A stretch of 64,000 nucleotides of DNA, taken from the sequence record PQ464595.1. One strand, written 5' to 3'. Under the pieces are notes generated by a model that searched no databases, was not told the DNA's origin, and saw nothing but the letters and a program-made list of their open reading frames with translations. The first letter of the stretch is position 1. Each line of letters begins with the position of its first letter. Position numbers and translations under genes: made by a program. Below, piece after piece: positions 60,254-60,943 of this stretch.

Positions 60254-60943
60254 TTAAGTTCCTCTTGTGCAACCGTACCTCTGTAAGAAGTCGTCGTTTC
60301 CAAGACTATTTAGCATTGTCAAATACCAATTTTGAGTTAGGTTCGGATCACAGTACCAAGGATACTTGGATAATGTACCAACTTTCTCCAATTCATGTTC
60401 TTCTGGTGGTAAAAATGTGTTTAATATAACATAATTGTATCCACCAGGGGCAGTTAGACTGAATACTTCAGCACTACCTGGACCCAAATATGGACTATCA
60501 TAGATTATAGTATCAAAATGATTTCCACGCATTTGTTCTCTAGAAGAAGTGAAAAACACATAGGATTTATTGTCAAATTTAATGTATCTTTCATTACTTT
60601 TCTCTATTGAGTATCGTGTTTGTGATGTATCCCATTTTTGTAGTACTTGTTGGTACAAAATATAAAATGTATTCTTTACATCTCGTGCCATCATATCTCT
60701 AGGTGAATTAAAAGCAATACTGCTTCCTGGATAGAACAAAGCCTTCCATAATGCGTATATACAGCTTACAGTTGTTAGTCCACATCCTCTATGACCTAGC
60801 ATATTTTGGGTTGTACCAGTTTTTAAGCCTAAAAACTTAGTAATCATATCAAACTGGAACCCTCTGAACTCCAAATCGAGATAATTCGACATAAAATAGA
60901 ATATATCATCTCGACAGAGTACGTATTCCCTGATATTGTTCAT
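60254..60943 (-). CDS. Truncated, degenerate terminase-ATPase paralog
   Basis: Aligns with the N-terminal half of the adjacent TerL ([38 protein letters not shown]) but has HRGCGLTT and IIYDSP. Confidence 0.75.

Follow-up and report, generated by a model that had tools for sequence, protein, structure and literature searches.

A 229-amino-acid open reading frame (ORF) directly upstream of terL, the gene for the large terminase TerL, was studied in a window of 64,000 nucleotides, the whole stretch of DNA analyzed here. The window comes from Kaldavass (PQ464595.1, 366 kb), a Rak2-like jumbo myovirus infecting Erwinia. The ORF lies at 60254..60943 on the minus strand, as do all features given below in the form start..end; it starts with ATG, is intact, and encodes a paralog of the TerL ATPase domain that is predicted to be a pseudo-ATPase. 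In the Kaldavass record the paralog is CDS0380 with the label "terminase large subunit", and the neighboring CDS0379 has the same label. terL (58603..60252) encodes a complete T4 gp17-type large terminase of 549 amino acids, which aligned with T4 gp17 over the full length (E = 4e-41) and has Walker A/B motifs and nuclease acidic residues of its own. The stop codon TAA of the paralog is at 60256-60254 and the ATG of terL at 60252-60250, with a single base (60253) between them. An earlier interpretation made from the letters alone (the sequence-only reading) described a frame intact over 229 amino acids that stops 2 nt before terL. The intact frame and the adjacency held; the value of 2 is a coordinate difference, and the actual gap is one base. 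The 4.6-kb terL region of the window was 100% identical to Kaldavass. It had 92% nucleotide identity with Xanthomonas phage XbC2, and 80–85% identity with CBB, GAP32, BF, fHe-Yen9-03/04, and the pEa_SNUABM phages; these relatives are Rak2-like jumbo myoviruses too.

Amino acids 10–225 of the paralog aligned with amino acids 38–288 of the adjacent TerL at 24% identity (BLASTP, E = 4e-12), far above chance, consistent with the full-length alignment with the TerL ATPase domain claimed by the sequence-only reading. The paralog belonged to phrog_5989 (PHROGs, E = 3e-53, amino acids 1–229), and its score against Pfam Terminase_6N was 19.3 bits, under the gathering score of 22. The alignment behind the remote profile searches consisted of window and metagenome proteins only. 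The hidden Markov model (HMM) profile of the paralog family matched T4 gp17 with E = 5e-11; Q30 was opposite YQ, HRGCGLTT was opposite SRQLGKTT, and a further 12-residue stretch of the paralog was opposite RGNSFAMIYIDE. The three-dimensional structure was modeled by AlphaFold2 (AF2), with a predicted local distance difference test score (pLDDT) of 79.9 and a predicted template modeling score (pTM) of 0.79. The best Foldseek match of the model was the ATPase domain only of T4 gp17 (2o0j/2o0h; E = 3e-11, TMq 0.72); the next matches were the ATPase domain of P74-26 TerL and the PhiV-1 terminase in its Avs3-bound form (8dgc_E). The RNase H-like nuclease domain is missing, as the sequence-only reading had stated: the paralog ends at the ATPase lid, at the "...EYNCEF" point of TerL, and had no Terminase_6C match. 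No match to a small terminase (TerS) family was found for the paralog in Pfam, in PHROGs, or by phmmer/HMM searches with gp16-type TerS. NCBIfam gave no match, and PADLOC gave one chance-level match (pAgo, E = 0.02). The isoelectric point (pI) of the paralog is 6.3, and its net charge is about neutral. The paralog is read as a functional protein of TerL ATPase-domain descent.

The Walker A motif of the paralog is degenerate (H51-R-G-C-G-L-T-T58, 60770..60793): TerL ARQMGKTT is opposite HRGCGLTT, and the Lys is replaced by Leu. The Walker B motif is also degenerate (T145-I-I-Y-D149-S150, 60494..60511): TerL DLLYLDEF is opposite DTIIYDS, the Asp is retained, and the catalytic Glu is replaced by Ser. 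Both losses had been noticed from the letters, and the alignment (HRGCGLTT, IIYDS) and the DNA translation (HRGCGLTT) agreed with them. Motif conservation was counted in 19 aligned paralog sequences. Y21, R52, G55, and L65 were invariant; Q30, W66, R139, G140, D149, and others were at least 90% conserved. The Lys position was occupied by L, I, M, V, S, or T and never by K. The Walker B Asp was found in at least 90% of the sequences, with S, N, D, H, or C in place of the catalytic Glu. Many full-length TerLs in the profile search have an alternative Lys two residues ahead of the P-loop Arg, K[AS]RQxG[ILMV][ST]T, with DE intact. The corresponding position in the paralog family is G, S, or N (Gly in Kaldavass, GHRGCGLTT). 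Therefore, the paralog family has neither of the two possible Lys residues. Judged from these motifs, the paralog is very probably incapable of ATP hydrolysis, and the word "dead" used for it should be read in this sense.

Other residues of the ATPase site were kept. Q30 of the F/Y-Q motif (60854..60856) aligned with YQ of T4 gp17 and is conserved family-wide. R139-G140 (60524..60529), at least 90% conserved, is 11 residues ahead of the lost Glu, directly preceding the Walker B strand, and aligned with RGN of T4 gp17. The trans-arginine finger R139 of P74-26 has been confirmed biochemically; it is located between α2 and β3, and T4 likewise has an Arg there (PMC5727402). The T4 arginine at the finger position and the alignment of the paralog RG with T4 suggest that R139 of the paralog would be the equivalent of the P74-26 finger. 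This pattern, loss of its own catalytic residues and retention of an arginine of possible use to a neighbor, is known from non-catalytic subunits of ring ATPases. The motifs were also retained in two barely recognizable orthologs, as PRQTGSTD and LRG...MDC in phage A4 and as SRQRGTTST and IRGK...MDN in Hallingskeid. The most constrained part of the paralog is the C-terminal strand with the lid-like helices (amino acids 161–229, 60257..60463), where the ratio of nonsynonymous to synonymous substitution rates (dN/dS) in windows was 0.06–0.22.

The paralog gene was directly upstream of terL in Kaldavass, XbC2, CBB, GAP32, BF, pEa12, A4, Hallingskeid, and four metagenomic relatives, with a spacing from a 2-nt gap to a 29-nt overlap. 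The order exonuclease, 166-amino-acid ORF, paralog, terL, and structural protein was kept in four metagenomic contigs. Identity to the Kaldavass paralog was 86% for XbC2 (XbC2_270), 50% for CBB (CBB_274), 48% for GAP32 (GAP32_268), 41% for BF (BF_0272) and pEa_SNUABM (pEaSNUABM12_00271), 26% for fHe-Yen9-04, and 22% for Asteriusvirus phage A4. The hhalign probability was 72% for A4 and 64% for Erwinia phage Hallingskeid. A collection of 5.8 billion proteins yielded 15 paralog clusters with 33–100% identity. The position was constant in every Rak2-like relative examined, up to about 78% amino acid divergence, and intact ORFs of 229–252 amino acids were found at this position across lineages only 22–50% identical.

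Selection was investigated by the Nei–Gojobori method with pairs of unsaturated dS (0.43–0.55). The dN/dS was 0.15–0.36 for the paralog, 0.03–0.05 for terL, 0.04–0.12 for the 166-amino-acid ORF, and 0.01–0.06 for the exonuclease. The dN of the paralog was 3–10 times that of its neighbors, and its dN/dS was 5–8 times that of terL; in some phage pairs the dS of the paralog was also 2–3 times that of the neighbors. No 30-codon window of the paralog had a dN/dS above 0.70, and positive selection was thus not detected. On a maximum-likelihood tree, the paths of the paralog vs. those of the TerL ATPase domain were 0.17 vs. 0.007 for Kaldavass–XbC2 and 0.89 vs. 0.012 for CBB–GAP32. Contigs from four metagenomes (freshwater, food-production, silage, and plant) had no indels over 59900-61500. 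In metagenome X4, two alleles had 104 differences and no gaps in the 888 nt that coincide with the paralog (60208-61095), with nearly identical flanks. Neighboring X4 contigs differ by about 1–5%, and diversity or allele exchange peaks locally at the paralog. The paralog is under purifying but relaxed selection. The sequence-only reading had proposed dN/dS and conservation across relatives as a check, and this outcome, together with the constant position in Rak2-like relatives, spoke against a decaying duplicate.

The final codons (T-R-G) of the paralog contain AGAGGA (60260..60265), the Shine–Dalgarno sequence of terL. In CBB, GAP32, BF, and one further relative (L024), the paralog and terL overlap by 11–29 nt, and other relatives share the Kaldavass arrangement. 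The position of the ribosome-binding site and the overlaps imply translational coupling. From the gene coordinates, the frame of terL relative to the paralog was +1 in most relatives and +2 in L025, which bears on the idea of a fusion by programmed frameshift. The paralog has a Shine–Dalgarno sequence AAGGAAG (60947-60953) 3 nt ahead of its ATG. The 43-nt spacer between the 166-amino-acid ORF and the paralog contains a conserved hairpin (60956..60980), AGTGCTGCC-UUU-GGCAGUACU, followed by U5. Its energy was −15.2 kcal/mol (z = −2.7), 95% of cells were paired across relatives, and two pairs had compensatory changes (fHe-Yen9-04 and L025). The hairpin points to a transcriptional boundary between the exonuclease and 166-amino-acid protein genes and the paralog and terL genes; it could be a terminator of the replication-gene transcript or a 5′ stabilizer of the packaging mRNA. 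TATAAATG, a candidate late promoter of the T4 type, shares bases with the stop codon of the upstream gene. The motif TATAAATR is not enriched, however (11 occurrences in the window vs. 11.2 expected), and no promoter is claimed. The only RNA-labeled runs were wastewater "metagenomic RNA-Seq" with low word shares, and they were not used as expression evidence.

Short TerL-like proteins were searched for with the paralog profile in 1.84 billion cluster representatives. A total of 2768 matches were obtained at E up to 1e-3, and the best 161 proteins were classified; the ranking is biased since the query profile itself is Lys-less. Among these 161, both the P-loop Lys and the catalytic Glu were present in 50 of 52 proteins of at least 330 amino acids, and no protein of this length was without both, vs. 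69 of 111 shorter proteins without both. Despite the ranking bias, the correlation between the missing nuclease domain and the missing catalytic residues is clear-cut in these sequences. Of the 69, about 45 were outside the Rak2-like group; among the top 150 matches, these amount to at least 45 clusters (50% identity) of short Lys-less and Glu-less proteins in T4-like phages. The ESM Atlas likewise contains many clusters of 230–300-amino-acid proteins with Terminase_6N alone. One short protein, P0026, was encoded 2 nt upstream of a TerL (the N-terminus of which was read) with an intein after its GK. Another, P0047, directly precedes a gene that encodes at least 502 amino acids, the identity of which was not readable. 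P0023 and P0039 were found in the order gp14, gp15, short paralog, 187–199-amino-acid protein, TerL, gp18. The 199-amino-acid protein beside P0039 was gp16-like (phrog_735, E = 6e-4; T4 gp16, phmmer E = 7e-9), and the 187-amino-acid protein beside P0023 was its homolog (phmmer E = 2e-61). phrog_5989 was also matched by P0039 (2.5e-47) and by XYS97501 of Sinorhizobium phage Phosso (1e-16).

For isolates with close relatives of P0026, P0030, and P0039, the tblastn matches shown were TerL genes, except for a stand-alone copy in Phosso, found via P0030. This copy (PV764938.1, L014:4001-4846) encodes a TerL-N-like protein of 281 amino acids that is Lys-less and Glu-less, with GRSMGIT and ADN at the Walker sites. 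It adjoins the major capsid gene, about 50 kb off terL, and its label "terminase small subunit" is a probable annotation artefact.

The origin of the paralog was examined with a maximum-likelihood tree of paralogs and TerLs, in which long-branch effects are possible. The Rak2-like paralogs were outside the clade of all TerLs (SH-aLRT 89), and the Rak2-like TerLs were deep inside it. The paralog profile scored metagenomic TerLs at 65–78 bits vs. 50 bits for the Kaldavass TerL. A recent duplication of the phage's own terL was therefore rejected. The short proteins were scattered at several places among the TerLs, suggesting repeated origins or poor resolution.

The ORF upstream of the paralog (60987..61487) encodes a conserved protein of 166 amino acids with unknown function (phrog_15898), and its start overlaps the stop of the 5′-3′ exonuclease gene. 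The protein had 98% amino acid identity with its XbC2 counterpart and a dN/dS of about 0.06. It was considered as a TerS, and the family scans gave only the PHROG of unknown function. Its ESM Atlas neighbors were unnamed viral clusters, and its AF2 model was unusable (pLDDT 40.7). The terL pair (compare 56005-57051, 57278-58567, and 61487-62470 of the window) has replication and recombination genes on one side and virion structural genes on the other. The former include a gp32-like single-stranded DNA-binding protein and an RNase H-like 5′-3′ exonuclease, with UvsX and UvsY further along the record. The pair is outside any T4-like 13–20 morphogenesis block. The Kaldavass terL (549 amino acids) is intein-free, and inteins interrupt terL in several relatives (L009:981-1328, L017:3508-6108, L023:3670-6009, and L024:4683-7358). 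The terL genes of L017 and L024 had LAGLIDADG matches in Pfam, L009 reads SARQIGK|ALSLDTPV straight after the Walker A GK, and the intein in L023 was deduced from a length of more than 780 amino acids. These inteins account for the 890-position profile of phrog_36964. In Escherichia phage A4 (ON286972.1, L003:5580-7218), a frameshift beside the Walker A codons (LTARQMRKNNSCSS) splits terL into two ORFs, and the annotated "large terminase subunit" A4_30 begins only past the break; a sequencing error and a real lesion are both possible.

The existence of the gene is already known, and the sequence-only reading, which was right that the gene is real, overstated its novelty. In the CBB paper, CBB_274 was described with an incomplete gp17 domain, suggested to be a truncated large terminase, common to other Rak2-like phages, and judged unusual; the same feature was reported there in Sinorhizobium phages phiM12 and phiN3 (PMC5259590). 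Three papers present the tandem truncated terminase as a representative feature of the Rak2-like group (PMC5259590, PMC7760394, PMC11273794). For XbC2, a tandem pair of large-terminase homologs was noted, and a small terminase was missing (PMC11273794). The available text of the CBB, Eneladusvirus, and XbC2 papers has no mention of the Walker Lys and Glu loss, of evolutionary rate, or of function, and the literature search yielded no paper describing the loss of catalytic residues in the paralog or proposing a function. New here are the diagnosis of a pseudo-enzyme, the retention of the putative arginine finger, the profile of selection, and the evidence for the commonness of similar TerL-derived pseudo-ATPases in T4-superfamily phages.

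In the textbook view, a terminase motor consists of two proteins, TerL and TerS, working on a portal. The favored reading, to which we give about even chances, is that the paralog would act alongside TerL as an accessory or regulatory partner without catalysis of its own. It is favored because the gene is next to terL and coupled to it, arginines are retained, and such genes recur in packaging modules. The paralog would be co-produced with TerL from the packaging operon and would dock on TerL via the ATPase–ATPase interfaces that build the packaging ring. There it may present R139-G140 to the active site of TerL and would add no turnover itself. Assembly, the firing of the ATPase, or the timing of the nuclease would thereby be tuned. 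Among Rak2-like phages, the paralog may also cover part of a TerS-type regulatory role, since no TerS was recognized in XbC2 or in this window; the search of the 64-kb window for a gp16-like ORF by phmmer/HMM with gp16-type TerS found none.

Several observations weigh against a TerL partner. The paralog evolves 25–70 times faster than the TerL ATPase domain, which is odd for a tight partner of a near-invariant protein. The P0030, P0065, and Phosso copies stand alone, far from terL, and the Phosso copy does not have the RG arginine. The paralog is no general replacement of TerS because T4-like metagenomic phages have both a short paralog and a gp16-like TerS. In Yersinia phage fHe-Yen9-04, g267 (L002:4247-4888) is cut to 185 amino acids, and deletions and a frameshift have removed the lid and the C-terminal third; therefore, at least that part is dispensable there. 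The remnant KLNSLE...GYTRGF is readable in another frame, 84 nt of degraded coding sequence precede terL, and the terL ribosome-binding site (ACTAGAGGAT) is kept inside the remnant. Based on the dN/dS, the gap-free metagenome contigs, and the fHe-Yen9-04 exception, the paralog is functional yet loosely constrained, and in one lineage it is at least partly dispensable. The fast evolution and the truncation fit an accessory or conflict-related role just as well.

A conflict-related role would be that of an anti-defense mimic, a TerL-ATPase look-alike that binds Avs1-3 or Upx without activation or diverts them from TerL. This was considered unlikely. The TerL ATPase domain by itself suffices to activate EcAvs2 and Upx, and T4 vs.8, which is TerL-like, is toxic with EcAvs2 (PMC13601566). 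The match of the paralog model with the Avs3-bound PhiV-1 terminase, the very fast change with the hypervariable X4 alleles, and the partial loss in fHe-Yen9-04, as for a conditionally useful gene, also fit a mimic, and co-expression with TerL would be the right timing for a decoy. However, recognition by EcAvs2 relies on ATP bound in the terminase site and a bridging ATP (PMC13601566), and a P-loop protein without Lys may not present that surface. The conserved arginines, Q-motif, and Walker B Asp would be needless for a pure surface mimic, no window of the gene had a dN/dS above 1, and even very distant T4-like phages have the gene at the same place in the packaging module. The Walker motifs of vs.8 are intact, its sequence is unrelated to that of the paralog, and no phage decoy for Avs was found described in the literature. 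The structural arguments for a TerL partner apply identically to a negative regulator or assembly chaperone, which would cap TerL monomers or partial rings and keep the ATPase and nuclease silent until portal docking. A subunit without Lys and Glu is expected to poison or pause a ring ATPase of the additional strand conserved E (ASCE) class, which counts for such a regulator. D6E TerL monomers are indeed held in an inactive "initiation" state (PMC5727402). Nevertheless, the conserved RG arginine argues for the supply of a finger, that is, activation and not blocking alone, and a negative regulator was also judged improbable.

A homo-oligomeric DNA-recognition ring that substitutes for TerS in Rak2-like phages was given a slim chance. 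The paralog gene occupies the classical TerS slot directly upstream of terL, no TerS was recognized in XbC2 or the window, and the fast evolution of the paralog is in line with the poor conservation typical of TerS proteins. Against this, the paralog has an ASCE ATPase fold without a TerS family match, its net charge is about neutral, and its relatives coexist with gp16-like TerS. The sequence-only reading had itself raised two further cases, a decaying duplicate and half of a split terminase, and both were largely refuted. Decay or neutral drift of a terL duplicate would fit the missing catalytic residues, the dN/dS elevated over terL, and the truncated fHe-Yen9-04 copy. It is very improbable given the intact ORFs at a fixed position in highly diverged lineages, the isolates and indel-free metagenomes examined, a dN/dS well below 1, and motif conservation that persists under extreme divergence. 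An active ATPase forming half of a split terminase is scarcely credible: it would fit the complete ATPase fold, in which Arg, Gly, and Thr of the P-loop and Asp of Walker B are still in place, but no family member has Lys at either P-loop position or the catalytic Glu. Moreover, the adjacent TerL is full-length relative to T4 gp17 and complete with its own ATPase domain and motifs, and loss of both residues was confined to the shorter proteins among the best 161 profile matches.

If the paralog is a true TerL partner, it would be a new kind of regulatory subunit, a conserved co-translated pseudo-ATPase, and it might be the reason why Rak2-like jumbo phages can do without a recognizable small terminase. 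If it is a true mimic of terminase-sensing receptors' target, no decoy against Avs-type pattern recognition would have been known from a phage before. More broadly and more tentatively, short TerL-derived pseudo-ATPases may be a widespread overlooked third packaging component of T4-superfamily phages, either a non-hydrolyzing ring partner that donates an arginine finger or a TerL mimic that blunts Avs2, Avs3, or Upx. The current label "terminase large subunit" misleads annotation, terL-based phylogeny, and marker counting.

The Kaldavass gene is an ortholog of the "truncated terminase" genes of Rak2-like phages, which are 41–86% identical and in the same position upstream of terL, and there is no difference in kind. 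The paralog shares its fold with the ATPase domain of T4 gp17 (2o0h, 2o0j, 3cpe), and YQ, the P-loop R..G.T, and RGN....YD align. Unlike T4 gp17, the paralog is nuclease-less, with Leu in place of the Lys and Ser in place of the catalytic Glu; the gp17 region before about residue 105 is missing as well (the match with 3ezk_A begins at chain residue 107). T4 vs.8 is similar in being small (about 220 amino acids), in having only a TerL-ATPase-like domain, and in being additional to TerL in a T4-superfamily phage. However, vs.8 (219 amino acids, L016:10254-10913) keeps Walker A GRQSGKS and Walker B IIDE (RG...IIDEP), which the paralog does not, and its gene, flanked by denV and vs.7, is a long way from genes 16 and 17. 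Homology between the paralog and vs.8 was undetectable (hhalign probability 0.3%, BLASTP E = 0.06). The paralog is like TerS of the T4 gp16 type in its gene position immediately upstream of terL, its translational coupling, and its poor sequence conservation. It is unlike TerS in its ASCE ATPase fold, there is no sequence match, and related phages carry both proteins. To our knowledge, a heteromeric terminase ring has never been shown. The delta-prime subunit of the E. coli clamp loader belongs to an unrelated family and offers a similar case: like the paralog, it is a paralog of an active subunit that has lost hydrolysis and has an arginine that can be presented to its neighbor.

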